A stretch of DNA of 64,000 nt, taken from the NCBI GenBank assembly GCA_002104905.1, contig MCFE01000427.1, positions 1 to 64,000 of the forward strand, in the 5' to 3' direction. Under the pieces are notes generated by a model. It was not told the origin of the DNA. It worked only from the letters and a program-made list of their open reading frames with translations, and did no database searches. The translations under genes were made by a program, and so were the position numbers. This DNA comes from Basidiobolus meristosporus CBS 931.73 (lineage: Eukaryota > Fungi > Basidiobolomycota). Of this stretch, positions 1,819 through 54,042 are shown piece by piece; position 1 is the first letter of the stretch, and every line of letters starts with the position of its first letter.

Positions 1819-2886
1819 TGTAGTGGGGTGACAGTGACACCCACTGACGGATGTGCTCATTCCCTTATTTTCTACTTCCCTTTATCTCTACTACACTTAT
1901 TTTAGTTTTATCCCATTTGTCTTACCTGATCAGTACTATCCCATAAGCCGGTTGACTATCATACCTGCTTACCTTATTGCATAAGTTACCCCTCACTTTA
2001 TGTAAGATTACTAGCTATAAGTGCTTCTATATTAGGCAAGTACCCACGCCAGTACCCATGACACATGGTCACCCCGTATCACCATCCCTACCATTTCCAT
2101 ACCATGTATGGTATCCCTATGTTACACAGGTTTCAGAATACTGATTCCTGATTGGTTGGATGTGCTGTGCCTCTTAGAACCTTCCGGCACCTACTTAGAA
2201 CATTCTTAGGTCATTCTGATGTCATTAAGATTTCTACTGATATCCGGAACCTTCTAGAACACCATGATTGGTAATCACTTAGGCAGTAAGAAAAGTATAT
2301 AAGGGAGGCTATCCCTCAACAATAAATCATCATCCCTTTTATCAATATACCAACTTGTTGATTAGTGTGATAACTGCTACCGGGTGCTACCTGAACTTCC
2401 AACCCCAGACCACAGGACACTCCCAGGAAATCACGCTGACAGCCAACTCATCTTGGAGGCACTACTTGTGAGGAATACTCAGAGTGGGTATCTTTTATTT
2501 TATTTAATTCTTTCACAAGTTTGATCTTGTACAGGCAAAGATACTTTTCTGTCTTTGTAACTATTGACCACAGCTGCATTCTTATCAAGTCCCTGCTGGT
2601 GGAGTTTACAGTTGTTTTGACTTTGGAAGCTTTAGTACATTGTCATCTCAAAGGACGCTGAACCCAGCACATACTTTTGCTAATATGCCAACTAAGTTGG
2701 GTATTGTGGCTCAATAGTTTTCCCTTGACAAGCTTGTGGCTTTATTCCCCTTCACATTAGATTAGAGACAGAACCCAAGTATTCCTAGCAAGCTTTTGCC
2801 AGAGGTTATTGCACCTAGTGAACACCCCACACACAAAACACTTGAGAAGTGTTGGACGCTCTCTCTTGGACTTATACACCACCACA
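1819..2886. mobile_element. Solo LTR (1068 bp) of an unrelated, probably gypsy-type retroelement inserted in the copia RT
   Basis: Starts TGTAGTGG and ends CCACCACA (imperfect inverted termini, TG..CA). Internal TATATAA and AATAAA. Splits the host sequence atag-ccgc-caat; flanks ccac/ttgc fit a decayed 4-bp TSD. Confidence 0.8.
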
Positions 2887-3856
2887 TTGCCAATAACCTA
2901 GAAACATTGGAAGAGACTAAATCCGGCCTATCTAAGGAGTTCAAGATGTCCAATCTAGGAGAACTTAGTTACTACTTAGGGATTAAGTTCCCCATAGACA
3001 GAAGTACCCAGACTATTAACCTAAGCCAATCCAAGTATATTCAAAATATACTAAAGGAGTACCAAACAGAAGACTGTAAACTGGCAGCTACCCTAATGGA
3101 GACAAGCCTTGACTTGGTCAAAACTCAACCAAATCAAGAGAGCTTGGTGCCATCTAAAAGCCCTGACTTTCCTTATCAATCTATAGTTGGCAGTCTGATG
3201 TATATTATACTTAGAACATGTGCAGATATCTCATATTCAGTGGGAGTTGTCAGCCAACATAATCAGTACTATGGATCTGATCATATTGCAGCAGTTAAGT
3301 GGATTTTCAGATACCTAAAAGGAACTGCTGATATCTGCTTAAAATACACTTATAAGGATTCAGACCAGGATCTTCTGGGATACTCTGATGCAGATTGGGA
3401 AAGAATTGTGGAAGACAGAAGATCCACCACAGGATACACCTTTCTTTACTGTAAAGGAGCAATTGCATGGAATTCAAGAAAGCAACCAACCGTAGCACTT
3501 TCCACCACAGAGGCAGAGTATATGGCAGCCTGTGAAGCTACAAAAGAAGTAATGTGGTTAAGAAAGCTTTTTAAAGATTTAGGCCTATGTCAAAAACTGT
3601 CTATTACCTTATTTCAAGATAAACAAGGAAGTATACAATTAAGTAAAAATCCAACTTTTCATGCTAAGACCAAGCACATAGATATCAGACATCATTTCAT
3701 ATGTGGAGCTATAGAGAATAGCTTAGTTAGCTTAGTTTACTGTCCTACAGGTGAGATGATTGCAGACATATTTACCAAACCATTTGCTAGAGACAAGTTT
3801 GAATATTTTAGGTCAAAATTTGGACTAGTCAGTATGAACATTTAGCTGAGTGGGAG

Positions 3857-9929: not shown

Positions 9930-12087
9930 TCAAGAGACTTGGAAATATTGGAAGTGATTAGGACAACAAGTAGATAATGTGGTTTCCACTAAAAATTTTA
10001 TTGAATGTAAAAGTAGTGTTAATTCTTTTACATAGTATTGGCAGAGCAAACATACCAAATATGCTTAAGAAGGTCCCAAGAATATGTGTGCAAATCTTTG
10101 GGCTGTTTGGACAGCTTGGAATAATTTCATCAAGATAGCAGGTACCCAGAGCATGAAAATTCTCAAAATAAATCCAACAAAAAATTGGGTCTGTATTCTC
10201 CTAGATTTGTAGGTATGAATCTAAGTGACTAAGTTGGGTGAGTATTTGGTAGAGTTACATACTTTACATCAGTTTTCACTTAATGCTTGAATCAATGTGA
10301 AAATATTCCAAGTCCCAGCAAAATATATGGTCAGAACACTTCAAGATTTGCAGGTGATGCTCAAAGTGAGCGTTCAGTTATAATACAAGCTTTGCAACAT
10401 TCCTGCTCACATGAAAATTCATACTACCAAGTCCAAATTGTGAACTGATATATTCAAATTTGTCTACAGCTAATGGCTTTGTATATATGCCCACAATCAT
10501 TTTATCTGTAGGGCAGTAAGTTAAGTTAGCTGAGTTGTTCTCTATAAATTCCAGTATGAAATGATGTCTGGTATCTATGTTATCAGTTTTAGCATATACA
10601 AAAATTGCATTTCAAATGTTGAACCAAAAACATCAGCTGAATATCAGCAAAGTAACTTTAGAATACAAGCAGAGTACCAGCTGAAAGTTCAATGAATTCC
10701 ATGTTTGGGATTTTTCACAGTGATGTATCTGGTGGTGAATCTCCTGTCTTCTGAGTTTTTCCTCATTCTGCATCAGAGTATCTCAAAAGATCCTCTTGTG
10801 AATCCTTATTTGTGTACCTTAAACATATACTAGTAGCTCCCCTTGAGTATCTGGAAGTTTGCTTAACTGCTGCATTATAATCTGATCAAAATGGCTATGC
10901 CAAGAACATTGACATTTAGAGCAAATAGAACTGGACTTGATTTGTGTGGCTATAGTAGAAGCATTAGTAGGCAGTACTTCATTGGGAACTCAGGGACTCC
11001 AGATAAGAGTCAATCTTGTACATCCAGGCTCTAGGTGACTTACATGGACTGTATGAAGGTTTTTTAAGCTTGCAGCCCAAACAGGGATCATATTAGTCAG
11101 CAAACCCATTAGACTGGTCCAGGTGCATGTTGTCATCAAATTTATGTTTCAAAAAGGGTTCTTACATCAATTTGAAGAATAACAAACTTATACTTGGCTG
11201 TAACTGCAACTATTGATTTGATGGAATCACACCTAGGTACAAATGCAAAGGTTTCAGTGTAGTCCAGTGATTTTGTCTGAGAGTATCCTATGGCCACAAG
11301 TCTTGCCTTGTATGTTCCAGTTATACTATCAGCCTCATATGTTACACTGAAGACTCATCTGCATCCAACCAATTTTCAGAAAGTTGGTAATTTGGCCAAA
11401 TCTTGAGTTTGATTTTCCATTAGGGCTTGATATTTCTGAGTCATTGCAGAACTACATAGCATTCGTTGAGGGCTATATAGGGTATCTTTTACAATCTAGG
11501 GCTCATACCTCTGGAATGATCCTGGGAACTGATTCCAGCGGAACCACAAGTGCAGAGTATTTGGAGTGAGAAAGTTATTGATGTTTTGCTCTGAATGAGT
11601 TACAACTGCTGGTAGACTTGGAATTATGCTTTTGTGATGATCAGATGACTTATTTTGTCAGAATGATAAGTTTAATCAGTTAGCACATCCCTAGATCTGG
11701 TCAGCATCTTTGCTTTGGCATTTCAGAGTCTCTATGTCATACCCTCATTGCATTAACCCAAAAATATGTTCTCACCACCTTTTGGATCAAGTTGTGATTG
11801 ATTTCCAGGCAGTTTCTTAGCATATGCTGTGCTATCAATTAATTTTTTGGTGCTCTACACTTGGTCTATATTCATTCCATGCCTCCTACAGAATAGAAGC
11901 ATGAAGTATTTTGCAATTACCCCCAATTTAAAGATGTGCATCTGTAACAACTTATTGCACCCAAAAACCATACCCTATGAAAAGTAATTTGGTCTTGCAG
12001 GTGGATCCAGTCTAGATCAGGCTTCAGGATCCCACCAGGAGACTTTAACAATACCAGCAGCTTTGAATTCATGACTCTCTACATATT
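9930..12087 (-). mobile_element. Heavily decayed copia relic (LTR-like piece, RNase H, RT, integrase remnants)
   Basis: Minus strand retains KT.nIDTRHHF-like and RT-like stretches similar to family A, with no long ORF. Boundaries approximate. Confidence 0.6.
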
Positions 12088-14620
12088 AGACTTGTTCTGC
12101 TCAATAGTGCCGCATTGTGCCAGCCTGTTTACAGTGCTGGAGTGATCTGGCACTCTATGGCATTATCTGGAACTCTGATTTCAACAATTTTGCCAGTGGT
12201 AGGATTCAGTTACTGGTCTTTTACTCAATCTTACTCATGTTGCTCTGAGCAGTGCTTTTCTTGCTTTATTTACTCTTATAATGCTCCAGATACATTTCTC
12301 TCAGCAGATATCTTCTTGTATGAATATACTGTGCATTAATAAGTATCTTACCCATTTTACTTATTCTGGTGTTTTCTCCTATATATGCCTTTCCTTTCAG
12401 TTTACCTGCTAATATGTTGGATCTCACTATATAGACAAATGTATGCTTTACTCTCACCCTGAAATGCTTAAATATCTCATTGTAGGGCTTCTACTCCTTG
12501 CTCAGCACTCCATTTCTTGGCTTCCTATGAGCCGCAATACAACCTAATCTCTGGCAATCCTTTCCTATATAAGCAAGGTTTGCTGTACATTTTTTTGCTC
12601 TACTGAATTCTGGATGGTACTATACCCAGAGTGCTTTATCCTGCCTACTCCCAGCAAATGGTATACTCAACCAGATGATGTTACCCTCAATGTCAGACAG
12701 TGTCTAAAACTTCAGTCAGTGCGCCTTGCATTTGCCAGAATAAAAGTGCCTCTGCCCTTTAGAGAGTCTGTTAATCCTGCCTGGGAAGATATCCAAAATA
12801 CTCATGATATGGAACCTGCTGCTCTACACTGTGGGATATGGAAGTCTATTGAAGCTTCTGAACCTAGTATTCCAAGCTTGCTGCAAGTCATTCATACCCT
12901 CTGCAAGGTGGTTCTCCATTGCTGTAAGCTTGGAATGAAAGCTTTTAGAACTTCTGTTGCCATGAATGGTGGGATGAAACCTTGTAGGGCAAGAGTATTT
13001 GTAATAGTAGAGAAGCTTAACAAGTGATCCCCTAGAGTAGACTGGGGTTGTTGGTCCATAGTACTTGGTATAGATTGCCTCTATGTGTCAAAAGGATATC
13101 CAGCAGTAGTGATGAGATTGATGAGAAAAGAACATTCAGGTGAGTAAACAATATCAAAATTGGTACATGATTGAGTAGAGGTGATTTGAGTTGATTTGGT
13201 GCAATCAGCTTAATTTATCTGATTTCCATGCATTATGATTAAACCTCCATCAGTTGCCATGTATTCCATCATTATGTTGCAAAAATCATCCTCAAACAAA
13301 GACTTGGTGGCTTTATTGATGCTTTACTCACCAGCTTATAACCAAATAGAAAATCTGCAACTGATGTAGTGTTATCTGTGTCAATGCAATCCAAGATGCA
13401 TCATGCATAATCTTTGGAAAATCAAGAATCCCATTAGTTTTTATGCATACTTCATATAAGACTAGGTTGATGCCAATATACTACTGTACAAGCATCCAAA
13501 TCTGTCACTATGGTCCCTATATCAAATCTCAACTCTTCTTAGGTATAAACCAGAAAAAACCCATCTCTCAGCTCACAAGTGCAGTCTTCACCAAAAAAGT
13601 CAATGTTGGATCTGCTTGAGTTCTTGCCAAATATTTTTAGTATGGTGCAAGTGTCTATGATATGCCTTCATACAGATATATGGGCACTACTCATTAATCT
13701 AGCAGAGCTGGATACCTCAGAGAGTCAACAAAGACGGATGAATCTGAGTAGTAAGCTGTGGCATGAGTTCTAAATCAAGATTCCAGTGCATGTATGTAAG
13801 ACAATATATAACAAGAGAAGTATTGGAGAAAAGAATGAGCTGAGAGTGAGGGGATTTGATGAGGAAGCCATGTGTGAACAATTTCACATGTAATTTGCAC
13901 AGTATGGGCTTGATGTGTCCATTTGTGACTCAACTTTGGGAACCAAAGAGATTCTGAATGAGTTTTTGCCTGAGATGACTAATATATTATAATATATATT
14001 TGTAGAGCCAAGTGGTCTCCAAGAGTAATACACACAGGACTCATTAAGGCAACAGTTTTAATGCATCAGTCAGAGTGCAAGTGAGTACCTTGATGAATAA
14101 GAAGGTCAGCTTCAAGAGGAAGAATTCAGGCTACAAGCAACTGCATCTAGAATGGGCCATCATGCCTTGCTGGATCTCCCACCATCCCCTGCAGTGTTGG
14201 TGCACCAGTGCATGCCAGTCCAATCTCAGCTAAAGCCCCTCACAGGAGTGTCCTGCATTGAGTCAACACTCATCATATCAATGTGCATGCTTTAGAAGAT
14301 ACCTACTAGAACTAACCAAACTGCTCACTTAGACATAGGTTCATTGGAGCAGGCTAAGTTGCATCAAGATGTAACATCACATCAAACTCAGCCAAGGGCT
14401 ATGCTAATGCATCAAGCTATACCTGCACATGCCAGTACACCTGAGCATTGCAGGTTTTACCCTGATCGGTGGTTGGTACTCTTCCTGCATGGCATGTTGC
14501 CATATAATAGCATCTGGACTCTGAATACCATGTTCCAGATTCTTAGGTTTCACACATAAGGCAAGATAAGCATCCTCAAGGCCATGGGGTGCCTGCCAGC
14601 AAGATCCTGGGGCATTTTTT
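12088..14620 (-). mobile_element. Second, inverted copy of the PHIS-type DNA transposon; degenerate but longer
   Basis: Starts ATT|AGACTTGTTC. Minus-strand ORF 12266-12457 matches the end of the 7860-8306 protein (…INAQYIHTRR.LLREM.L.HY). Carries ~0.9 kb (about 12920-13835) missing from copy 1. Right end approximate. Confidence 0.75.
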
Positions 14621-23005: not shown

Positions 23006-24964
23006 AAAACCACACAATCTACTTATTCTCCTAATCACTTCCAATATTTCCAAGACTCCTACAAAACATCATAGCCTAGTGACAATTACCAAACAGGGTA
23101 TACCAGGCACAGAGACTGGCTCCTATCTGATTGCAAGAATAGGAAACTCCAAGCAGTGAGATGTTGTTTGTAGAAAAAAGTATCCTATATTTTGCTGCAT
23201 ATGCACCTATGTCCTGAGTCTTTGGCTGATCCTAGGCAGAGAATTTACACCCAACATCACTACTGTGGCTTACTTGGATAGCTTCTGTTAACTTGTGTTA
23301 AGTGCTCTGTTGTCTCCCATGCAAATCTTCATTTGTATCCTTAGATAATGGGTATAAAGTTCGTTTAAGTGTGGCAAATGTTGAGATGCTCCAGAATCAA
23401 TAAGCCACATCTGAAAATCTTTGTTTGCTGCTGCACTTATCACAGATATGAGTAGTTAGTACTCAGTGGCTGTGGTGTTTTCAAGTTTATATATTTTGGG
23501 TTCATATCTCTTGTTGAGGAGCACCAGTCCTATGAGTATCCTTTCCTTTTTCAGTATTTACAACATACAGTGTTTCTTTCTTTATAGGGTTGTGCACATG
23601 ACTTTGGATGGCCAATATTGCTTAATAAAGCAACTTATACTTCCTTTAGATTGGGATTTGATTTGCTTAGTTTAGTGCACAAGTGTCTGTACACATAAAT
23701 AATCCAAAGTCAAGTCCTCAGTTCTGGACTCTAGGGTGGACACAAGATCCTGAGATCAGTCTGTTAGGGTACTTAGGATGGTAACTATAACATGTTCATC
23801 AGTGGTTAGCACTTCAATTGTTTATATCACATCTACTAACTGGACAATTCAGATAATTATGTTTTTCATCTCTTTTCCCAGAGTTTGCATATTTTTATTG
23901 AGTCCCAAATGCTGATTGGATGTACTGGTAAATATTGTGAAAATGAGATGTCCGGTCTGCCAAACGATCATATAAAACATCATCAGATTTTTTGGTGGCC
24001 TATATTAATGAATATCAGAGGGCATTGAAAACGATTTGGAGACCTGGTACATATGCATGAAAATCTGTTGCTGCTCTACTGTGTCCCGACAGAGTAGATG
24101 TACTTTCTGGATAGCCTCAGGGAACCGATCTCCATATTGTATTTAGAAAGGTTCCAGCAGATGACACACCGTTTTTGGGGCGACATGGGGGAAAATCTTG
24201 AAGTTTGGACAACTTCGAAGATATCATAAGTACAGTGAACTAGCTAGTATGTTACAAACCGGATCTCGAGGCAACCGATGATTTCGAGGCGTGAGGTGGT
24301 TGACACATTTGATGATCAACCTAAGTGATCTAGGCAACTTACTGATACTAGGCAGGCGGGTTTTTCTGGTGCCACTTCCTAGGTGGCAAAGCCGAATCAA
24401 CTCTGGGATGTCCATGGAAACATAGGCAGAGCACCTCATCCCAACAGAACACTTGATGCCATGGATCGTTTGATACAAGGGAACTGCCGCTATCGCGACG
24501 CTCATCACCCAAATCAAGATAATGCATGCATGGTTTCATTCAAAGCAAGGCGGGAAGTTCAAGTGGCATGCAACGATTCCGGAATGCGCGGATTGGTCGG
24601 TCATGGCATGACTCATTTGGAGGGAAATCGCATCAGTGCCGTGGATGTTGATGGCTTACTTGAAGCAGGCACATGGGCGTTCCTAAGCCACCTGTGTTTC
24701 GTTGGGTCAGCGTGTTTCATCAGTACAAAGAATAGGAATGGGAATGGAATGGCAATGGAGAAGGAATCGGGACAATTAATCCATGGTAAAGTGCAGGATG
24801 AGGGGTCACAAAAAAGGCTAGTTCTTGTTTGGGCCGCCATCTAAGACCAATGGTCCATGGTCATGGTAACCGCAACCACAGGCGGGTTATATAGGTGCTC
24901 ACGGCGGACGGGATTGGTTGTACTGATATCTCGCTGGAGAGGACACTTCCCGCCGCCTTCTGCG

Positions 24965-25971
24965 ATGAACTTTGGTGAACACCCAGCGGAGTCCCTTGAG
25001 GGGGACCCTTCGTTGTCGACCAACCCCGGACATTTCTTTGACCTCCGCGCGGAGAGCCTGGTGGACATGCCGTTTCACTGGAAGCAGTACTTCGAGGAGC
25101 TACAGAATGCGATGCTGTCCCAGATAACGCTGAACTTTCGAAGCTTGCACGAACGTCTCGATGGAGTAGAGGAGAAGCTGGAGTACGTGCTGCGGACGAG
25201 CGCCGGGAATTACTGGAACGCCAAGGTGTCCGGGATCGAGGCGACCCTGGACAGCCTGACCAACACCACTCCGAAGCCCCCTCACCTTTCACGAAACGAC
25301 CACTTACCGGTTGAGGGCACCCCGGGTAGGCAGCATATACCCGACAGCTCGACCACCCCTCGCCCCAACCCGAACAGTATAAGCAACGCACTTTCCCCAA
25401 CCACCCCAGGTACCGAGAGGTTTCTGTTCCAGGTAAGAAGCCCGAGTGTTGGCCAGTACAACTAACTAGACCTTTGACGGCAGTGTCCCAGCTACCCTCG
25501 GAAGAAAGTGCCAAGGTGAAGGTGCTGCTGAGGCAGTTCGCAGCCGGTGCCATGAACTACATCGACAAGAACGCCACCACCTTTCTCAATGTGAACAACC
25601 ACGCGGGAGGTAAGGCTCTGTGCGCAGTGTAGCCCGTCAGCAGGTCGACGAGGTTCTAACCCCCCCCCCCCTTTGCGTTCTGCGACACGCCAGCCATCTC
25701 CACGATGAAACGATTCGGGCTCTACGAGTCCCCGGCGTGGGACAATTTCACTCAGCTCCACTTCCCCCACGTGCTGAAACGGGACCTGACGGACGAATTG
25801 GTGAAGATAATCACGGTCAAGGTGAAGAACACCAAGGCCAGATACAAAAAAGTAAGGGATCGCGGTTTGGTTTGTCTCGCCCACGGTCCCACTAACCCCC
25901 GACCTCCTCCTCGCATTTAGAAACACTCCACCTCGCAGTCGACCGAACCCAACTCTGGCCTCGATGGCTGA
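24965..25971 (+). CDS. Hypothetical 4-exon protein (259 aa): coiled coil, Pro/Ser/Thr linker, basic helical C-terminal domain
   Basis: Exons 24965-25409, 25484-25609, 25694-25851, 25921-25971 join in frame (780 bp). Introns are GT..AG with (A)CTAAC branch points; TATA-like TTATATA ~75 bp upstream. First donor (25410) chosen because it preserves frame. Confidence 0.75.
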
Positions 25972-26341
25972 GCCTCCGCCTCGGGCAGGAGATCGATTTT
26001 TGTCCAGGATTTTGATATATCTCATTCACCACTTGTATTTTCCCTCGGCCATCTTTGCAGTCAGGCCAAACATATGTAAATGTCCCCGAATGTTGATGAG
26101 TTGCCACTACCACGGAAGGTACATACTGTAATCAATGTAAAGCTCGTCCACAACCCCTCCTCCCTCCTCCCTCCCTCCCCCCGACCACTTTTCCTTCACC
26201 AACACCTTGCCCAGATAAATGTTCGCCGAACCGGAAATGCGAGGGAAGTGCACCTCGCTGACCCGAGAAAACCGATGACTGCTCTAAGGAGAAATGTTTA
26301 TTTGCTGTTTGATGCCAGTTTGGTAAAGATGAGGGGTGAGT

Positions 26342-26756
26342 TTAGAGGGAGCCTTGCATGTTCTGGGACTCGCGTTGGACGCGAGTGATGTAGGCACGGG
26401 AGACGGTGTTCCAGGCCTCCATGTAGCGGTCCATGCACTTGGAGATGCAACCTTGCTCACCGCTGTCGAGACGGGAGCCGGGCTTGGGCACGCACTTGGC
26501 GAAGCATTTGTCGTTCATTTTCTGAAGGGAGAGAGAGTGAAGTGAGTTTGGGGGTTCCGAAGGTAAGGGCTCAACAGCGGGGACCCGATGAACCGAGTCC
26601 CCACACTCTCCTCGGCCCATTTGAAGAAAGACCACTTACGTTGATGAGCTCCTGGGCGTTGGCAAGGGCCAACTCGCTTCTGACTTGGTCCATGACCTGT
26701 TGCTTCTTTCCAGCACCGCTGGAGGGGATGGAGAAATCACTGGCGTATTCACTCAT
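26342..26756 (-). CDS. TIM13: Mitochondrial small Tim chaperone Tim13 (98 aa, 1 intron)
   Basis: Exons 26756-26640 and 26521-26342 give …[12 protein letters not shown]|[10 protein letters not shown]…[20 protein letters not shown], with the twin CX3C motif. Intron GTAAGT..TTCAG. Confidence 0.95.
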
Positions 26757-27239
26757 GGTGTAGGTGTGGTGGTGGAGGTGGTGGTGGTAGTGGAAGTGGA
26801 CACGGACGTCGACGAACTAGGTAAACTTGTAGGTGGTCAGTTTCCTCGAGCTTATTATTCAAAATTTCCTCGTCCCCCCCCCGTTTCCGCTCCCTCCGAT
26901 CGTACCCTCTTTCCCATTTTTTCCAAAGCGAAAATTTTTCCTGCTCCGCCATCTCGCCGATTTCCTCCACTTACGGCGTTCGATTTCGTCCTCTCACCCC
27001 CCCCCACTCCACCGGGGTGGGGGAATCGGAGGTGAGAGTTGGACCAGGGGTGAGAATGTGACAGGGGGAGGGGATGCTATGACGTCAATTCGGAGAGGGC
27101 GCTGACGATGAGGTATGGGCCGCCCGTTTCAGAATGGCCACCTATGATACCATGGCCTGGTGAGCCAAATAAATTCATCTCAGGTGGGATATCTCCAAGG
27201 CGATGTATAAAAGCCAAGGCGGACCTACGGATGCCACCA

Positions 27240-27798
27240 ATGAAGTGTGTAAACCTCTACAGAATCACCATCCTACTGTTCGCACTGTGCGCGGTCTCCT
27301 GCGTGGATCGGGAGGTATCATGGTCGGCCCCTTGCCTCACCCAGTCCCCTGCTAACCCATCTCGAATCACCCTCTAGATTGTCCGTATCACCAGTCCCAA
27401 AGCTGGGGCCACGCTGAAGTTCGGCCAACCGATCGATGTCACCTGGGAGTTGCCGCAGGACCTTGGTTTCATGAATTTCACCGCGGAGCTCTGGTCCCTG
27501 AACACCATCCAGGCTGGGAGCTCCAGGAAAATCGCCACCATCGGACACACAGACTCCTCCAAAGCCCAAAGACAACGGTTCAAGATCCGATGGAATGTCC
27601 CCACCTTCACCACCGAGATGAAGACGGGGTATTTCATCGCGGTGTACGGGAACGTGTTAAAGTAAGTCCCCCCTCCGGAACGAGCTATCCCTGATGAGAG
27701 ACTAACGAACAAGTGGACATAGCAAAGGGCCGGTCTTCTCGTGGGTCTATCCCTGGGACAACGTCTACTACGGGTTGGTCAACGTTCGCTTCGCCTGA
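27240..27798 (+). CDS. Small secreted protein (147 aa) with a Kre9/Knh1-like N-terminal Ig-like domain
   Basis: Exons 27240-27314, 27378-27661, 27714-27798 in frame (444 bp). Signal peptide, then ITSPKAGATLKFGQPIDVTW…RWNVP. TATAAAA at 27206-27212. Confidence 0.8.
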
Positions 27799-28486
27799 GT
27801 GCTCGGATGAAAACCTCGTGTCACCAAGAATACCGCCAGAATAAACAAACCTTGCTTCGTTTGAAACAACCAGGGACTTAAGTGATTTATAGGAATAGCA
27901 TGCAACTTGCCATGTTGTCACCATGGGCATGCGGGTGGCGAGGGGGGGGGGTATCCTAGCATTCTTCCAAGGCCCCCGTCCCTTGATGCGTATGATCTAA
28001 CTTGGCTGTAAATGAATCCGATGAGGGTTAGAGTGAGTGATTTGTGCCCAACACCAAATTAATGAGCAACTGGAGTGGTACCTGATCCATCCAGATCGCG
28101 CTACATGGATACTGGTGCTGGATGATGTTGACCAGGATCCAGTCATTGCCTGGCAATTGTGGGTGGGATATATCCGCGATCCAAAGATGCAGTGCACCCG
28201 AAGGTGCCATGCGTACATGTGTCTTCATGCAAGCAGCCATCAGGAGTTTCGGGTTTAGGAGATGCTGTTCTGCAGGTATTCCAATTGCCAGGGATAACTT
28301 CCGTAAGGCGTATCCATGTAATGGAGGGCCAATAATCCGAGCTTCACGGTGAGCGGCTACAGCACTATTTAAGTGCACCAGAGGCCACACTGGATGTCCA
28401 AGCAAGTATCATCCTCATCTCTAGTAGCCAGCACCAAGCACCGCTTTCACCAAGCATATAGATCTTCTTTCCCTCCACCATCAATC

Positions 28487-29038
28487 ATGCGTTTCTTCTC
28501 AGTCAGCCTTGCCTTGGTCGCTTTGACCTCCCTCCTCCTGACCAGCGCCAATGCTGCGTCATTTGAGAAACGCCACGGAAACGAGAAACACGTGGCCTCT
28601 GCGCTTGAGAAACGTCACGGTAACGAGAAACATGTGGATGCTGTACTTGAGAAGCGTCATGGTAACGAGAAACACATCGCGGCGGTTCTTGAGAAACGCC
28701 ATGGCAACGAGAAACATGTGGATGCTGTACTTGAGAAGCGTCACGGCAACGAGAAACACATCGCCGAGCTTGAGAAGCGCCACGGAAATGAGAAACACGT
28801 AGTAGAGCTCGAGAAGCGCCACGGCAACGAGAAGCATATCGCCGAGCTCGAGAAGCGTCATGGTAACGAGAAACACGTCGCGGCGGTCCTCGAGAAGCGT
28901 CATGGCAACGAGAAGCACGTGGTAGGCCTCGAGAAACGTCACGGTAACGAGAAGCACATTGCTGAACTCGAGAAACGCCATGGCAAGGAGAAGCACGTGG
29001 CCAGCGTGGAGAAGCGACACGGTAATGAGAAACATTAG
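28487..29038 (+). CDS. KEX2-processed repeat protein (KEP, 183 aa) with 12 HG(N/K)EKH cores
   Basis: Signal peptide MRFFSVSLALVALTSLLLTSANA, then repeats KR-HGNEKH-(4-5 aa)-EKR. Synonymous codon variation among repeats with a conserved core. Confidence 0.93.
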   Translation: MRFFSVSLALVALTSLLLTSANAASFEKRHGNEKHVASALEKRHGNEKHVDAVLEKRHGNEKHIAAVLEKRHGNEKHVDAVLEKRHGNEKHIAELEKRHGNEKHVVELEKRHGNEKHIAELEKRHGNEKHVAAVLEKRHGNEKHVVGLEKRHGNEKHIAELEKRHGKEKHVASVEKRHGNEKH

Positions 29039-29401
29039 AGGGCCGCAACCACTAGACCCACACCCAAAGAACCCTCATTTATCACCAGATCCCCCGTATC
29101 TCACTGGCCTGTATACAGCCATACGGCGAAACCAATAATTATCAAGCAACACCCGAATTAACCCAGAATTCACTATTTGCCCAATAAATTACCCGCTGTT
29201 TATTTCGATCTTGGGTGTGTGCTCGAGTTGATCTGGAACGGTATTTCGGGCTCCAGTCCTTTCATCAACCGGAGCCACTAGTGAGTATCATGATAAGGGG
29301 TGGGGTGAGGTGAGGTGAGGTGGGATGGGTAAAGGAGTAGGAAACAATGTGGCAGGGACAGCAGACTACCTGCCCTGCCTGCGTTCCTCTTCTCTCCCCT
29401 C

Positions 29402-29800
29402 CTAGAGAACTTTTTTGCTCACGAATTGGCCACCGGTAGTCCCCTCACGCACGAAGGTGGGGTCGTTCTTGGCCAACCAATTCTCCAGCAGGGCCAGGTT
29501 GTAGATGTTGGCCTTGAACAGGACATCCAAGAAGTCCCCGACGAAAGGGACCAGTCCGATCACGGCGTCCACGACGACGTTCAACACCATCAGCCCGATC
29601 AGGGTGACCGGGATGCCGAGCTGGGCGGACATGTAGATCTGGTACAGCGAGATGAGCAAACCGGCAATGTCACCTATCCCGGGGATCAGCCCAATCAGAG
29701 GGTCAAGGCCGATACCAAAGGGCACACCGGGGATCGCATCCATGTAGGAGGCGAAACGGCGGATGTTGTTGAGCAAACGCTGCTTTTCACTGGAGTTCAT
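29402..29800 (-). CDS. DUF4112 domain membrane protein (132 aa)
   Basis: MDAIPGVPFGIGLDPLIGLIPGIGD and IGLVPFVGDFLDVLFKANIYNLALLE are typical DUF4112 motifs. Confidence 0.88.
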   Translation of the reverse strand: MNSSEKQRLLNNIRRFASYMDAIPGVPFGIGLDPLIGLIPGIGDIAGLLISLYQIYMSAQLGIPVTLIGLMVLNVVVDAVIGLVPFVGDFLDVLFKANIYNLALLENWLAKNDPTFVREGTTGGQFVSKKVL

Positions 29801-30420
29801 GGAGATGCACAGTGGTGAAGGTCAAGGTGAAGGCGAAGGCGAGGTGGATGGACTTGAACAAGAACCGTAATCCCCAGGATGAATTAGGTCACTACTAGCA
29901 TGACTGTCTTCAGGGATGGATTGGTTCGGGTTCGCAGTTAAGCTTCATCCAATCGATGTGGAGAATACCTGACTGGTCTATGGATCAGGATTGGCTACGG
30001 AAATATCCCATAGATCTCGCTTCGGGTTGCCACCTCTGAAAGACGTAACAAGATAACAGGATCCGCAGAGATAAATGTAGGTGGTGAGCATCTCACATAC
30101 TGATGCCAACTCACCTCGCAACGACAGGGCCAGCGAAACGGCTCTTATCTATCAAGCTGATTCGCCATAGAAAGGAAGGTGAGGCTCAAACGCACGTGCT
30201 ACTCCAAATCAATGGCCACTATATTTGGCACAACCGATATGGGACCACAATACTGGCTGGCAGCATCTTTCCGAAACCGTCGATGCCTATTTTATCAGGC
30301 CACGGGTAAAATCTCATTCGAGTCATCCTTGCTCAGGAGGTCCGAGATCCTTTATAAGCGTAGATCAGGGCCTTGCCAACTACTTTTCCACTTCTCCACC
30401 CCCACCCCCCCCCCGCAAAA

Positions 30421-31897
30421 ATGGTTCTTGAGAGCAATCCCGTCAAGTTAGAGAAGGTCCCTGACGCCAATGGGTTCTTCGGACCGTTCGGCGGCTCTTT
30501 CATTCCGCCGGAGCTCCAGAAACAAATGGACGACATTAATTTCGGGTATACTCGACTTAGCAAGTCCCACGATTTCATCCAAGGTGAGTGCTAGACGCAG
30601 CCCCGGTCGCATTTTCGGTCGGCTGACGTTGTTTCGGTTGATGTAGAACTACGCAGGATCCGCAAGCACTTCCAAGGTCGCCCGACCCCTGTCTATTACT
30701 GCAAAAACCTCAGTGAGAAGATTGGCGGCGGCCGAATCTATCTGAAGCGAGAGGATCTGAATCACACCGGCGCCCACAAGTTGAACCATTGCATGGGAGA
30801 AGCCCTGGTGGCGAAATACCTGGGCAAGAAAAAGCTGATCGCCGAGACCGGAGCGGTGGGTAGATCCTCGTCACCTGCGCCACCCCTTTGTTCATCCCGC
30901 TAACCATCATCCTCTGCAGGGGCAGCATGGCGTCGCTTTAGCCACGGCAGCGGCCTACTTCGGCCTCGAGTGTGAGATCCACATGGGAGAGGTGGATATT
31001 GCCAAGGAGCATCCGAATGTCACCAGAATGAAGATCTTGGGCGCCAAGGTCGTCCCGGCCACCCACGGACTAAAAACGCTCAAGGAGGCGGTGGATTCCG
31101 CATTCGAGGCGTATCTCAAAGATCCAATCGACTCCATCTACTGCATCGGCAGTGTGGTAGGCCCACACCCATTCCCCAAAATGGTGCGCGAGTTTCAGCA
31201 TGTGGTGGGCCTGGAGGCACGTGAGCAATATCTGGAGATGACTGGTGAGTGGCGGTTATGCACTGAGTCCAGGATGCAATCTTGACTGACTGTGGTGTTC
31301 AATTAGGGGATCTTCCTGACCATGTTGTCGCATGTGTGGGTGGTGGCTCAAATGCCATTGGAATGTTCACTGCTTTCCTTGAGGATAGCGAAGTTCAGCT
31401 GCACGGAGTGGAGCCAATGGGCAAAGGAACCAAACTTGGTGAACACGCAGCCTCGTTGAGCTATGGCGAGGAAGGAATCATGCACGGTTTCAACTCGATC
31501 ATGCTGAAGGATGAAGCCGGTGAGCCCGCCCCGGTCTACTCTATCGCTTCTGGCTTGGACTATCCCAGCGTAGGTCCAGAGCATGCTTACCTCAACTCCG
31601 TGGGCAGAACCCAAGTTGGTACGGCTAACGACGAGGAGACGCTGCATGCGTTTTTCCAGCTTTCACGACGGGAAGGTAAGGTGGTGGAGTAGCTGAGTTG
31701 CCGGTTGTATGCTAACCGATAGCGTTCTAGGAATCATCCCAGCTCTAGAGTCGGCTCATGCTGTGGCATATGCCATCAAGCTCGCCCGAGAAAACCCCAA
31801 TGCCAGCATCTTGGTAAATCTCAGTGGACGTGGTGACAAAGATATAGATTTCGTCATGGAGAAATATGGGGAGTATGCTGACCGCGACGACTATTGA
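30421..31897 (+). CDS. trpB: Stand-alone tryptophan synthase beta subunit (410 aa, 4 introns)
   Basis: Exons 30421-30583, 30647-30855, 30920-31244, 31307-31675, 31731-31897 (1233 bp). [14 protein letters not shown] (PLP lysine), [50 protein letters not shown]. No alpha domain. Confidence 0.96.
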
Positions 31898-32929
31898 TGT
31901 ACTGTATTCTTGACCTAAATAAATAATGTTCCCCGTAATTCCCCCGTAGCTCTATCATTCAGCCTTGGATTGTATCTTGTATGCTGGATAACCAAAGGAT
32001 TAAGCTTTCCTGCACAATATTGGTCAGATGGGATATATCAAGCCACTGATTATTTTCCAAGAAAGCATTGCATTAAATTGCTCATCAACTGCTATCTTGA
32101 GTCCATTTCCTAATTGGTTTTCATAGCTTTTGTGGCTGACCAACTCATTTATTGGCCAGTACAATGATTGATGAATACTGGGCCTTTTAGTGTAGTGTGT
32201 TACATACCTATTTTCCAACTCTTAATGTTTTAAATGTTTCAGAATCACCTAAAGCTAACACTAGATTTAACATTCTAATCATGTTAAACTTTATCATGTA
32301 CCAGAATATTTTGCTGATCTTTGATATAACTCACATGCTATGTGCAACATTATCAGTATTCTATAGGATTATTCCCAGACCCAAAAACTTTGAAGCTAGC
32401 AGATTTGTTTGTAGATTCCATGGATTGCTCAGCATCTATGTATTTGCACCAAATGCAGAAATAAAAGTTCTAAATACTTATACAGTTTACAAGCTTTCCA
32501 TACCAACTATATGCTGAGTAAAATGCAAGATTATAAAGCAGTTATCTGAAAACAAAAAATTTTCTGAATAACTTAATTCTTTGAAATGACATTCCATAGG
32601 AACCAAGTATGGTTTTAGATTCCAAGCTCAAGTCAAATGAGTATTATTTTTAGAAGGTAAACCAAGATCAGTTTGTCATAGACCAATTGAATAAATTCTT
32701 GAGGAAATATCTTTTGGTTCAATCAGCTTTGTAAAGATCATACCAAGTATATATTTTAAAAGTCACATCAAGGAGTATTGTCCTAAACTTTGCTGAGCAA
32801 GCTATCTTAATCTACCTGTAGTGCTCTGCACTCAGCTGCTCTCTGACACAGTACATCTCAGCAAAAGAGTCATACATTCCTTCTTGGATGCAACAGAAGT
32901 AACAGTGCTCAAAAGCTGAAAATGGTCTA

Positions 32930-36026: not shown

Positions 36027-36518
36027 ATGCAATTTAGCAGCAAGGGTGAGAATCTACTGAAGTCCATCGAGGGCCTATCGTTGCAACCGTACGATGATCA
36101 AAAGGGCCTGAGTTCGGCGCCAATCAAGAGCTGGGTTGCAGGAGCAACCATTGGGTACGGACACCTGATCCCCAGCGCTCAGTGGAGCAAGTACAAGAGC
36201 GGCATCACCAAGGCCGAGGCTGAAGCCCTTTTCCAAGCCGACCTCAAGCCATTCGTGCAGGCTGTCAACGATTCGGCCAAAGTGAAGCTCCAGCAGCAGT
36301 TTGATGCCTGCGTGCTTTTATGCTTCAACATTGGCGTTAGTGCATTCAAGACCTCCTCTGTAGTCAAGATCCTGAACGGGCAAACCACCAGCTACCCCTC
36401 CCTGGAAGCGGCCTGGAAAGCCTGGAACAAGAGCCAAGGACAGGTGAATGCTGGACTGGTCAACAGACGAAATGCCGAATGGAAAATCTATACACAAGGA
36501 ATCTACGAGAAGTGGTAG
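36027..36518 (+). CDS. Phage-type lysozyme/muramidase (GH24, 163 aa), intronless, no signal peptide
   Basis: IEGLSLQPYDD, ATIGYGH (E-D-T catalytic triad), ITKAEAEALF, QQFDA…FNIGVSAFKTSS, GLVNRRNAE. Confidence 0.92.
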   Translation: MQFSSKGENLLKSIEGLSLQPYDDQKGLSSAPIKSWVAGATIGYGHLIPSAQWSKYKSGITKAEAEALFQADLKPFVQAVNDSAKVKLQQQFDACVLLCFNIGVSAFKTSSVVKILNGQTTSYPSLEAAWKAWNKSQGQVNAGLVNRRNAEWKIYTQGIYEKW

Positions 36519-48560: not shown

Positions 48561-50065
48561 TAAATTTTTTGAATCAGGAAGTATTATCTGAATCCCAACG
48601 TCTTGCACTATCAATCTTGGGTACCGAGGCTATTTATGTTGTACAAGTTACAATCACTGCGAGATTTTGTGGATGACATACATGTGATGGAAGTGGAATC
48701 ACCGGTTTGTTTGTAAAGAAATCAAGTATCTCTATTGGAGACCCTTATATTACTATCAAATCCACCATTGCTTACATGAATATAAAAATGGATTTATAGG
48801 AAGGATGAAGGGAATGTACAGGAGCTCCACCTTAGCCCTTGCTTTAGTGAGTAAAATGAGCAAGATGAGCCTGGTTTTACATTGTAACATATCAATAATG
48901 CTGCAAAAGCCAAGGCACTATCTTATCAATGTAGGGCATTTTTGCCATCAAGGTGCAACAAACCTGCTTCAGGGGGAATTGATAATGGCTCAGAGCTAAT
49001 CATCATTTGTGTTACCAGACTTTCAAGGAGACTTGTATGAATATTTAATTAGTACTGGGTGTGGGGTTGAGAGTTATTTACAATATGGATGTGAGCACTG
49101 TCTGCTGGGAAGATGTTGTATTTGAATCAAGTGTCATGTTGCCAAGAAGTCTCATATCATAAGAGTAATATATGACTCTTGATGGTGTACCAAGGCCTGT
49201 CTTTATCTTCTGTGTAGGATTCACATGATTTCATCCATACATCATTTACCTCATATTTGTCCTGCTTGCATAAATTTCTCTATATGTTGCAATCTGGTTA
49301 GGATTCACTTTGTTGTCACTGATATGCTATATTTAGATCCATCAAATATTCAAAAAGGGCCTGTTGATTGCAAGTTACTTTGTTAATTTATTCTTTGGCA
49401 TGTTTGATGGGCATATTTTGTTATCCTGAACCAATGCAACTTGGGCTGTGATGGTGCTATATCTATGTGGTACTGATCCCTTATCTAGATGCTTATAAGG
49501 TATAGCCAGTTAGCTTTTCTTACAGGATTATTTATTTTATTCTCACTGCATTGAAGTAAACTTTATCTCACAATAATTCTGCGGAAACTTTGTAAATGGC
49601 TGATGATTGAAGAACTGAAGGTAGGCTTATAACATCTCATTTGAGAAGTAAGTACATGCTGCTGGCATATAAGGCAAAGCTTGCACACTAATGTTAGTTG
49701 CCGCTGGTACCTACTATTGTACACCTCTATAATTGTTGTAAAAATTCGTATTTCCACCTAAATATTCACCTAACTTAGTCACTTAGATCATCACCTTCAA
49801 ATCCTAGAGAATACTGACCAAATTCCTTGTTGGGATTTACTTAGAATATTTACCCAGAACATGAAAATTTGATAAGTTGTCCAAACAGCCCCAAACTTTG
49901 CACACATGTTCTTGGGACCTTCCTTAACCTATTCTACGGGTTTGTAATGCCAAGACCATGTAAAAGTATAAATACTACTTTTACATTCAATAAATCATTA
50001 AGTGAAAACCACATAATCTACTTGTTCTCCCAATCACTTCCAATATCTCCAAGACTCTTACAACA

Positions 50066-50077
50066 GGTTATGAGCCC
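50066..50077 (+). promoter_or_regulatory. Primer-binding site GGTTATGAGCCC (copia half-tRNA-iMet type)
   Basis: Directly abuts the 5' LTR, resembles the Drosophila copia GGTTATGGGCCC PBS, and contains the gag ATG. Confidence 0.75.
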
Positions 50078-53000
50078 CAAGCTGTCACTCTCTGCAATGT
50101 CTACTACTGCTATTACTGGAATTTTTCCCTCTGCTGAAAAGTTGGATGGATCTAACTACCAAGTGTGGAAGGTGAAGATGAAGATGCTGCTACAAGAAAG
50201 AGGCCTTTGGGATATTGTCATGGGAGAAGAATGCCCTCCTAAAAACATGGGAGAGGAAGCCTTAAAGTACCAGAAGAAAGAACAAAGTGCCTTTAACTGC
50301 ATTTGCCTTAATGTCAAGGACAAATTGCTAATTCAATGCTCAAGAGCAAAAACGGCAAAGAATGCCTGGAAGGCATTAGAAGACACCTACCAGTCATGTT
50401 CAGCTGCCAAGAAAATGTATCTGAGAAGAAAATTCTTTACTACAAAGATGCTGCCAGGAGAAGAAATGAAAAATCTAATTAACAGAATTACCCTGCTGGT
50501 AGATGAGATGGAATCTGTGGGCGTACCAACTACTGATGAGGATGTGATAGTTACCATCCTGAATAGCCTGACAGACGAGTTTCAGGGCCTTGTATCAGCC
50601 CTAGAGTCCAGAACTGAAGATTTGACCTTAAATTACGTATATGGAAGGCTCCTGGATGAAGAATTAAGAAAATCAAGCGCCAATAAGAAGGAAGAAGAAA
50701 ATGCTTTAATAAGCAATGATAACCAACAAAGGAGGTACCCAAGACCCTACAAAGGCAACAACAACCTATTTTGCAACTACTGCAAAAGGAAAGGACACAC
50801 ATCAGACCGGTGTTTCAAAAAGAGAGATTATCAGCAAAAGAAGCCTGAATATGGAAATGCTGCAACAACTGAAGATAGACTATTCATATCTGCACTAAAT
50901 ATGACCACAAACAAGGATTCTCAGACGTGGTATATTGACTCTGGAGCTTCCCAACACTTTACACACCAAAAAGAACTTTTTACCCAATATCAAGAAATTC
51001 CAATTAAGAAGGTTTTCATGGGTGACAATAGAACACTTGATGCAGTGGGAGAAGGAACTATCCAAGTAAACCTTAGAAGCAGTGAAGGAAGCCATACACT
51101 GACCTTTAAAGAAGTACTCTATGTACCAGAAATAGCCAAGAACCTACTCTCTGTAAGCAAGGCCACAGCAGAAGGACTCAGTTTCAGTTTTAACAATTCT
51201 GGATGCAGGATCACTGATCAAAATGGTGCCCATATTGCTTCGGGCATCAGAGATCAGAATCTATACAAGTTGACTTATATTCCATCATATCTGGAAGCCA
51301 ATATAAGTAACTTAAATGAAGAAACACCAATGCTTTGGCACAGGAGATTTGGACACATCAATTTTGATTATTTGCGTAAAATGATCAAAGATCAGCTAAT
51401 TTCTGGAGTGAAAATTGATCCCCCAGCTATTTTGGAGCACTGTGAAGCCTGCATATATGGGAAACAAGCCAGACAACCGTTCAAGAGCTCTGGGTTAATC
51501 AAAACTAAGAAAAAATTAGATCTAATTCACTCAGATCTGTGTGGACCTATGCAAAATTTATCCTTAGGTGGGATGAAGTATTTAATCACTTTTATTGATG
51601 ATTATACAAGATACACATGGGTCTACTTCATGGAGAGAAAGGAAGAAGCTCTGTCTAAGCTCAGGGAGTTTAAAGCCATGGTGGAGAGAGAAACTGGTGA
51701 AAAAATCAAGAAAATACGCTCTGACAATGGTGGAGAATATACCTCAAAACTCTTCATCCACTTCTGCAAAATTCATGGGATAAAGCAAGAGACTACTGTA
51801 CCATACTCCCCACAGCAAAATGGAGTAGCAGAACAAGCTAACAGATCAATAATTGATATGGCAAGATCTATGATCCATGATCAAAAATTATCCTATGATA
51901 TTTGGGCGGAATCAGTTGCCACTGCTGTATATCTTAAAAATAGGAGTTATAACAGAATACTTCGTGATTCTACTCCATTTGAAGCATGGTATGGATACAG
52001 ACCAAGTGCAGAACATCTAAGAATATTTGGGTGTACAGCATATGCCAAAAAACTGGCCGGAAATCAGTCAAAATTTGAGCCAAAAAGTGTAAAATGCATA
52101 TTTTTGGGCTACTGCAATGAGAGTAAGGCATACAGACTCTACAATACCAAAGCAAAGAAGCTGATCAAGTCCAGGGATGTGTTGTTTGATGAAAATTCAA
52201 AATTTTCACAAAAAATGACATCAGATGATGACGAAAATTTGATCTCAAGTCCACCAATTGTCAGGATTGAATCAGAGCAAAACAATGAAAATTTTTTCAC
52301 TCCAGAGGACTCTACAACCATGGTTCAGCCAGAATCAGTGCCCAGGAATATCCCAGAAGTGATCATTCCAGTATCAAATGCCCGGAGATCCAATCGGACA
52401 AGAAATAGCCCAAATTACTATATCAATGAGGGTACAAACTTAGCCTATGCCTATTCAGTCCATGTTGATGAACCCCAGACTGTAAAAGAGGCCCTAAATA
52501 GCCCTCAGACGAAGTTTTGGAGATCTGCAATGACTGAGGAATATCAGGCACTGATGGAAAATCAAACTTGGGACTTAGTCAAATTACCAATCAACCGAAA
52601 ATCAATTGGATGCAGATGGGTCTTCAAGACAAAATACAAGGCTGATGGTACAATTGAAAGATACAAAGCAAGACTTGTAGCCAAAGGATACTCTCAAACA
52701 AAAGGACTTGACTATACTGAGACCTTTGCACCGGTAGCCAAGTTTAATTCCATCAGATTAATATTGGCTATTGCAGCCAAATATAAGTTTTTTATTCATC
52801 AAATGGATGTAAAAACTGCATTTTTGAATGGAGAACTTGATGAGGACGTGTATATGGACCAGCCTGATGGGTTTGTTGACCAAGATAACCCCCATTTGGT
52901 CTGCAAGCTTAAAAAGTCACTATATGGTCTCAAACAATCACCGAGAGCCTGGAATTGCAAGATAGATTCTTATTTGGAATCTTTGAGTTTCAAAAGGAGT

Positions 53001-54042
53001 AATGCTGACTATAGTATATACTATAAGCCAGATAGAGCAAATCCAGTTCTATTAGCTCTATATGTGGATGATCTTATTATAGCCGCCAATAACCTAGAAA
53101 CATTGGAAGAGACTAAATCCAGCCTATCTAAGGAGTTCAAGATGTCCGATCTAGGAGAACTTAGTTACTACTTAGGGATTAAGTTCTCCATAGACAGAAG
53201 TACCCAGACTAGTACCCTAAGTCAATCCAAGTATATTCAAGATATACTAAAGAAGTACAAAATGGAAGACTGTAAACCGGCAGCTACCCCAATGGAGACA
53301 AACCTTAACTTGGTCAAAACTCAACCAAATCAAGAGAGCTTGGTGCCATCTGAAAGCCCTGACTTTCCTTATCAATCTATGGTCGGCAGTCTGATGTATA
53401 TCATGCTTGGAACATGTCCAGATATCTCATATTCAGTGGGAGTAGTCAGCCAACATAATCAGAATTATGGATCTGATCATATTGCAGCAGTTAAGCGGAT
53501 TTTTAGATACCTAAAAGGAACTGCTGATATCTGCTTAAGATACACTTATAAGGATTCAGAACAGGATCTTGTGGGATACTCTGATGCTGATTGGGGACGA
53601 AATTTGGAAGACAGAAGATCTACCACAGGATACACCTTTCTTTCACTGTAAAGGAGCCATTTCATGGAATTCAAGAAAGCAACCAACCGTAGCACTTTCC
53701 ACCACAGAGGCAGAGTATATGGCAGCCTGTGAAGCTACAAAAGAAGCAATGTGGTTAAGAAAGCTCTTTACAGATTTAGGCCTATGTCAAAAAACGCCTA
53801 TTACTTTATTTCAAGATAATCAAGGATGTATACAATTAGGTAGAAATCCAACTTTTCATGCTAGAACCAAGCACATAGATATTAGACATCATTTCATACG
53901 TGAAGCTATAGAGAATAACTTAGTTAGCTTAGTTTACTGTCCTACAGATGAAATGATTGCAGACATATTTACCAAACCATTAGCTAGAGACAAGTTTGAA
54001 TATTTTAGGTCAAAATTAGGACTAGTCAGTATGAACATTTAG
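50070..54042 (+). CDS. Copia gag-pol polyprotein (gag, zinc knuckle, protease, integrase, RT, RNase H) with one +1 frameshift at ~53644
   Basis: CNYCKRKGHTSDRC knuckle, WYIDSGAS protease, HRRFGH…CEAC zinc finger, SDNGGEY, LYVDDLII, GYSDADW. RNase H continues in the 53569-54042 frame. Confidence 0.95.

Follow-up and report, generated by a model that had tools for sequence, protein, structure and literature searches.

A tandem array of short repeats, open in three reading frames, lies in the 64,000-nucleotide stretch of Basidiobolus meristosporus DNA analysed here (the window). The locus raises two questions: whether the array belongs to a gene and, if it does, what product the gene delivers. 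The original prediction was that it encodes a secreted KEX2-type precursor (KEP), and that the mature product is the hexapeptide HGNEKH. The features that bear on these questions are collected in Table 1.

Table 1. Features of the precursor gene and of its surroundings in the 64-kb window
Feature	Position	Strand	Basis
Complete single-exon CDS of the KEP precursor, stop included	28487-29038	+	ORF reading; frame set by third-codon-position variation
Residues 1-23, predicted signal peptide: MR, then the hydrophobic core FFSVSLALVALTSLLLT, then the cleavage motif A-N-A	28487-28555	+	sequence features
ASFEKR, short pro-segment that closes with the first Kex2-type site	28556-28573	+	
12 tandem units of 13-14 codons each	28574-29035	+	unit coordinates, Tandem Repeats Finder, per-segment pS/pN
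TATA-like box TATTTAAG, putative core promoter, 121 nt upstream of the ATG	28366-28373	+	position only
Candidate polyadenylation signal AATAAA, 145 nt downstream of the stop codon	29183-29188	+	position only
DUF4112 membrane-protein gene, convergent neighbour and synteny anchor	29402-29800	-	Pfam PF13430, E 6e-31
PLP-dependent TrpB-like gene, several ORFs, presumably with introns	about 30373-31900	+	
Copia-type polyprotein ORF, apparently intact, 1260 aa: gag, protease-like barrel, integrase, RVT_2	49869-53651	+	
Degraded RVT_2 fragment	2796-3845		
Agmatine-deiminase-like PAD_porph protein, intronless, bacterial/phage-type	56389-57582	-	E 1e-106
GH24 phage-type lysozyme, intronless, bacterial/phage-type	36027-36518	+	E 2e-30

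The precursor ORF is intact and free of introns, and encodes 183 residues between the ATG at 28487 and the stop codon at 29036-29038; the uncut protein would have a mass of about 17 kDa. It is built from MRFFSVSLALVALTSLLLTSANA, followed by ASFEKR and then by the 12 units. The N-terminal segment is a signal peptide candidate with the n/h/c pattern and an h-region of GRAVY 2.15, its cleavage site being placed by the -3/-1 rule only. Downstream of residue 23 there is no hydrophobic stretch. Each unit has the form HGNEKH + [VI]xx(x)[LV]E + KR, and the last consists of HGNEKH alone, with the stop codon directly 3' of it. What follows the KR is HGNEKH in 11 of the 12 units and HGKEKH in the other (unit 11). 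The tails of units 1-11 are VASALE, VDAVLE (twice), IAAVLE, IAELE (three times), VVELE, VAAVLE, VVGLE and, in unit 11, VASVE. By Tandem Repeats Finder the array spans 28563-29035, with periods of 39, 78 and 159 and a score of up to 485, which is far beyond chance. The ORF, with 12 copies of KR-HGNEKH/HGKEKH after a predicted signal peptide, is therefore confirmed, and its reading as a KEX2-type precursor is supported. The list of spacers given in the original prediction was accurate in what it named, and left out VAAVLE and the multiplicities. Sampled words of the 64-kb stretch are present in three DNA-type sequencing runs (X1-X3) at a fraction of 0.89-0.92.

Long ORFs are also found in the other frames and on the antisense strand across the array. 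With three frames open, and with a product that has no entry in the protein databases, the array might be nothing more than a tandem DNA repeat that is open by chance, and no functional gene. The pattern of variation argues strongly against this. Within the nine codons of EKR+HGNEKH, all the variable nucleotides are third codon positions. Nei-Gojobori counting over the 66 pairs of units gives a pS of 0.83 and a pN of 0.007 (ratio 0.009), the single replacement in the block being the change from N to K. The tails of the same array have a pN/pS of 0.28-0.39. This confinement of variation to third codon positions fixes the reading frame of the precursor. The frame so fixed is also the only one that has an ATG, a signal peptide candidate and a stop codon at the end of a unit, and the antisense and out-of-frame ORFs are by-products of the periodic sequence. 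The copies of the unit are old at synonymous sites, while the protein sequence of each has been kept identical, and every copy is under strong purifying selection. The earlier claim that the codons of the core vary synonymously around a fixed peptide under selection is thus borne out. In addition, an ortholog with conserved architecture survives in B. ranarum at about 70% DNA identity. A chance repeat is an extremely improbable explanation, and one that is effectively refuted by the selection pattern.

The ortholog came from a survey of synteny in related fungi, which the original prediction had proposed. It is located at the DUF4112/TrpB-like locus of B. ranarum (L002:10838-11326, minus strand; assembly GCA_040143965.1, contig JASJQH010000581.1), where it stands tail-to-tail with the DUF4112 gene, with the TrpB-like gene adjoining, in the same gene order as in the window. 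Its frame runs off the end of the contig. The array begins with a partial unit, ...EKHIASVEKR, continues with eleven complete units of 13 residues with the pattern H-N-G-(EK or QQ)-H-V-A-S-V-E-K-R, three of which are variants (HNGEKQVASVEKR, HIGQNHVAPVANR and HNGQTHFAPVEKR), and ends with the unit HNGQHINTI*. Compared by local phmmer, the two precursors score 175.6 bits with an identity of about 56%. As judged from the two sequences, the precursor family is common to B. ranarum and the source genome of the window. The gene model called in B. ranarum (10838-11280) has 130 residues and 443 nucleotides, a length not divisible by three, and starts at an ATG in another frame, which is that of a 143-residue ORF. 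The annotated product is most likely out of frame, and this, together with the truncation at the contig end, would explain why the ortholog escaped protein searches. A second B. ranarum contig with a DUF4112 gene (L003) ends 230 nt after that gene, too soon to be informative.

The comparison of the two species shows which parts of the unit are retained. These are the KR, His1, His6, the Gly/Asn pair, [V/I]7, Ala8 and the (V/L)-E ahead of the KR. The core, taken to be fixed in the original prediction, is indeed invariant in 11 of the 12 units within the gene, but not across species, where HGNEKH is set against HNGEKH or HNGQQH and only His1, His6 and the Gly/Asn pair of the hexamer are kept. 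The order of this pair differs: GN is present in all units of the B. meristosporus array, and NG in nearly all of the B. ranarum units. Such a split by species implies that, once the species had separated, each array was homogenised or amplified on its own. Even so, the synonymous divergence within the arrays is strong, with a pS of 0.38-0.54 in B. ranarum to be compared with the 0.83 given above. The tail VASVE, shared by B. ranarum and unit 11 of the B. meristosporus gene, may be the ancestral one.

The gene is not present at every such locus. At a further B. meristosporus locus (L001), the slot between DUF4112 and Tim10 (10400-12265) contains no KEP, on the basis of ORF listing, a KRHxxxxH regular expression, tblastn and blastn, from which it follows that the gene is dispensable in the genus. 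At this locus other genes occupy the place where the TrpB-like gene would stand. Beyond Tim10 at the empty slot (L001:13691-17480), the locus carries genes for a gamma-glutamyl transpeptidase and an Nramp metal transporter; the Tim10 side in the window has AT-rich sequence in their place.

The surroundings of the gene in the window are heterogeneous. Positions 24000-32000 form a sharp 8-kb island of about 52-54% G+C, which holds the Tim10, KEP, DUF4112 and TrpB genes (the first a Tim10-family ORF recognised by Pfam). It is flanked by long blocks of 35-42% G+C with the remains of retroelements. The copia-type element of Table 1 has possibly been active recently. The TrpB-like gene beside DUF4112 is kept in B. 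ranarum, at 69-71% DNA identity. The DUF4112 protein has its best matches in B. ranarum (83%) and B. meristosporus CBS 931.73 (78%), with a range of 73-83% within Basidiobolus. Outside the genus identity is at most 54%. Most of these more distant matches are unnamed proteins from metagenomes; a few have a named source, which is bacterial each time (Vicinamibacterales, Chthoniobacterales, Kofleriaceae and Alteromonadaceae). The DUF4112 gene looks like one of bacterial origin, and Basidiobolus is known for genes of such origin. It is probably not linked in function to the KEP gene. Pfam scans of 20 long ORFs of the window detected no DUF3328/UstY and no tyrosinase, and the UstY motifs HxxHC and HCxDxLR are absent from the six-frame translation of all 64 kb, in agreement with the earlier statement that neither is visible nearby.

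Two sequence definitions of KEPs have been published. That of Umemura calls for a signal peptide and at least three repeats of at least 8 residues, none longer than 100 residues, between dibasic sites (KR, KK, RK or RR) (PMC7329392); here there are eleven inter-KR segments of 11-12 residues, plus a terminal 6-mer. The definition of Le Marquer et al. is a secreted protein with no transmembrane domain that gives at least four similar fragments after in-silico cleavage at KR/RR (PMC6339444), and cleavage of the present precursor at KR yields 13 fragments, 12 of them alignable. With its signal peptide predicted by rule, the gene fits both definitions. Like the KEPs of these surveys, it has near-identical short tandem units bounded by KR and following a leader, here a predicted signal peptide, with no other domain, and like 78% of them it has no DUF3328 neighbour (PMC6339444, PMC7329392). 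The catalogue of Umemura comprises 7878 proteins from 1345 strains, of which 2560 are singletons with no homolog; most KEP types are confined to one genus, Zoopagomycota is the phylum richest in KEPs per strain, and B. meristosporus, with 43, is the KEP-richest of 1461 strains surveyed (PMC7329392). The lineage-restricted Basidiobolus precursor resembles the stand-alone, genus-confined KEPs of that catalogue. It differs from other KEPs in that its conserved block starts immediately behind the KR, without intervening Ste13 dipeptides, and in that its peptides are bracketed by His and have no aromatic residues.

The peptide itself appears to be new. When the precursor was run against a word-indexed protein collection, 8000 candidates were scored and all stayed above E = 0.001. 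An exhaustive HMMER search of 1.84 billion representative proteins gave 63 matches at E <= 1e-3. The 14 short ones were inspected and are unrelated periodic or translated-repeat sequences, with neither a signal peptide nor KR-His units; the rest are stretches of 18-45% identity inside mostly far longer proteins, and are spurious. The exact precursor sequence has no record in the protein databases, and HGNEKH does not occur in the literature searched. The core and its variants are likewise absent from the supplement text of both KEP surveys (PMC6339444, PMC7329392), that text including part of one Umemura file. The original prediction had named membership of a characterised KEP family as a ground for rejection; no such family was met in the databases, in the literature or in the survey supplements to the extent just given. 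Its description of the precursor as new-looking is appropriate for the peptide sequence, but not for the class, since KEPs are already catalogued (PMC7329392).

We consider it likely, from the architecture of the precursor, that it is a KEP processed into linear peptides bearing His1 and His6, which would act outside the cell. In the KEP pathway, Kex2 cuts after KR, Kex1 strips the basic residues, and Ste13 removes only N-terminal X-Ala or X-Pro (PMC6339444). The signal peptide would direct the 183-residue precursor into the ER. In the late Golgi, kexin would be expected to cut after each of the 12 (L/V)-E-K-R sites, which have the canonical arrangement of Arg at P1, Lys at P2 and an aliphatic residue at P4, and a Kex1-type carboxypeptidase would then remove the trailing K and R. 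The precursor has no X-Ala or X-Pro spacers, the KR being followed by His-Gly, and because this is the new N-terminus a Ste13 step is not expected. The predicted products are eleven linear, unmodified 11- to 12-mers, HGNEKH-[V/I]-x-x-(x)-[L/V]-E, and one C-terminal HGNEKH, and each would have a free N-terminal His and a second His at position 6, with the Gly/Asn pair, able to form a tight turn, between them. Tyr, Trp, Cys and Pro are all absent from the mature region. Since the peptides lack the first three of these and the window has no UstY motif, a linear unmodified peptide is expected, with no cyclisation of the dikaritin type. The predicted peptides are hydrophilic, and their net charge lies between about 0 and -2. 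Their predicted [M+H]+ values are 1276.628 for HGNEKHIAELE (three copies), 1347.665 for HGNEKHVDAVLE (two copies) and 721.338 for HGNEKH, the others being 1291.639, 1317.691, 1303.675, 1290.644, 1218.623 and 1220.638.

This set of products differs from the one originally predicted, in which the bare hexapeptide is the mature unit, present in 12 copies, and the [V/I]xx(x)[L/V]E spacers are discarded by additional exo- or endopeptidases. The proposal has some attractions. [quoted passage not shown] LC-MS of Pichia and of mushrooms has detected KEP peptides processed by KEX2, KEX1 and STE13, along with a degree of C-terminal trimming (PMC9769878). However, the argument for the hexapeptide as the mature unit depends solely on that last copy at the stop codon, and the ortholog does not repeat it: the last B. 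ranarum unit, HNGQHINTI*, gives no clean hexamer. Further, in B. ranarum it is the tail that is the more constrained, with a pN/pS of 0.12 for VASVE and of 0.31 for the hexamer, where EK and QQ alternate at positions 4-5, and [V/I]7 and Ala8 are kept between the species. Conservation of the tail may in part serve only Kex2 recognition (P4 and P3). The claim that the spacers are trimmed by more than Kex1 meets a further difficulty, in that no known step of the secretory pathway takes off 5-6 residues and halts exactly at His6; Kex2 and Kex1 together give the 11-12-mers. The bare hexapeptide is therefore an unlikely mature product. For the longer peptides preferred here, some further C-terminal trimming towards the hexapeptide would be possible, and is not required.

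A different possibility is that the precursor is secreted largely uncut, as a β-rich repeat protein: a 12-stranded β-meander with Gly-Asn turns, serving for instance as a coat on the wall or surface or as an amyloid-like layer. In a variant of this, the peptides are cleaved and then assemble like the Ustilago Rep1 repellents. AlphaFold2, run on the intact protein with an alignment of 2 sequences, produces such a β-meander, in which each unit is drawn as a 12-residue strand and the chain turns back at each GN in a hairpin loop of two residues. Among β-hairpin loops of that length, GN and NG are the two classic ones (types II' and I'), and the ortholog has NG precisely where the B. meristosporus gene has GN. 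The tails are also rich in the β-branched residues Val and Ile. The confidence of the model is, however, low and inconsistent (best pLDDT 67.6 with pTM 0.54, the other four models 47-58), and repeats often yield hallucinated models of this kind. The variation of unit length between 13 and 14 residues would shift the register of the strands, and the strands are not amphipathic. It is also hard to see how twelve optimal, exposed (L/V)EKR sites would escape kexin. Taking these points together, we regard the uncut or assembling protein as improbable.

The preferred reading, of linear His1/His6 peptides released by kexin, leaves the matter of their function. A metal site, a signal and a biotic interaction are all ideas drawn from the composition only. 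The likeliest roles of the peptides, outside the cell, would be to bind a divalent metal (Cu, Ni or Zn) through the N-terminal amine and imidazole together with His6, or to act on other organisms of the gut or dung. A free N-terminal His and a His6 across a tight turn make a plausible candidate site for Cu, Ni or Zn, and the exchange of GN for NG is compatible with a metal-binding turn as well as with hairpin turns. The more specific proposal, that the peptide is a secreted metallophore or metal buffer whose N-terminal His amine and imidazole are joined to His6 by the Gly-Asn turn, is a long shot. Were it true, a gut-dwelling, early-diverging fungus would have a means, at 12 copies per transcript, of capturing or detoxifying Cu, Ni or Zn, or of withholding them from bacteria. 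A cationic antimicrobial peptide is ruled out by the net charge.

Comparison with characterised systems places the precursor among processed polyproteins and apart from each of the better known families. It resembles the alpha-factor precursors of Saccharomyces and other Ascomycota in its predicted signal peptide, its (L)-[ED]-K-R sites, its multiple copies and the ending of the last copy at the stop codon. Unlike them, it has no sequence homology to MF-alpha (PF04648, PF05436), no long pro-region, and neither EA/DA Ste13 spacers nor a Trp/Pro-rich 13-mer. The MF_alpha profiles found no match, a Pfam scan of the precursor giving only sub-threshold chance matches, and an alpha-factor-like peptide is ruled out by composition. 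Alpha-factor was the nearest named look-alike in a language-model comparison (0.78), with apidaecin at 0.69; all values were below 0.9, and these are leads only. The precursors of the dikaritins ustiloxin, phomopsin and asperipin (UstA-like KEPs) are likewise of KEP type with many short cores. The Basidiobolus cores differ from theirs in lacking any Tyr or Trp at which UstY could form a cross-link, and the 64 kb hold no UstY motif; with no tyrosinase or UstY domain among the long ORFs scanned either, a dikaritin RiPP cluster is rejected. Lastly, Rep1 of Ustilago maydis and Ece1 of Candida albicans (candidalysin) are polyproteins cut by Kex2, whose released peptides target other organisms or work at the cell surface. 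The Basidiobolus precursor would appear to share with them the layout of a secreted polyprotein with Kex2 sites between several peptides. The Rep1 and Ece1 peptides are hydrophobic or amphipathic and 30-50 residues long, whereas those predicted here are of 11-12 residues, hydrophilic and slightly acidic, with a charge of -1 to -2.

The reading of the gene as a KEP holds, while the hexapeptide product and a strong claim to novelty are doubtful. By itself the precursor alters no concept: it adds a new peptide sequence to a known and very common class of fungal precursors. KEP-derived peptides are nevertheless abundant in fungal genomes, with functions known for almost none, and to our knowledge no KEP-derived peptide has been studied in Zoopagomycota. 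The present precursor offers a clean test case, being short and putatively unmodified, with exact predicted masses, an occurrence in two Basidiobolus species and an unusual invariant pair of His residues. It also illustrates how KEP genes escape the protein databases, the B. ranarum ortholog being apparently annotated out of frame and the B. meristosporus gene having no entry. Since such genes are missing from the databases, counts of KEP types that are based on annotated proteomes are underestimates.
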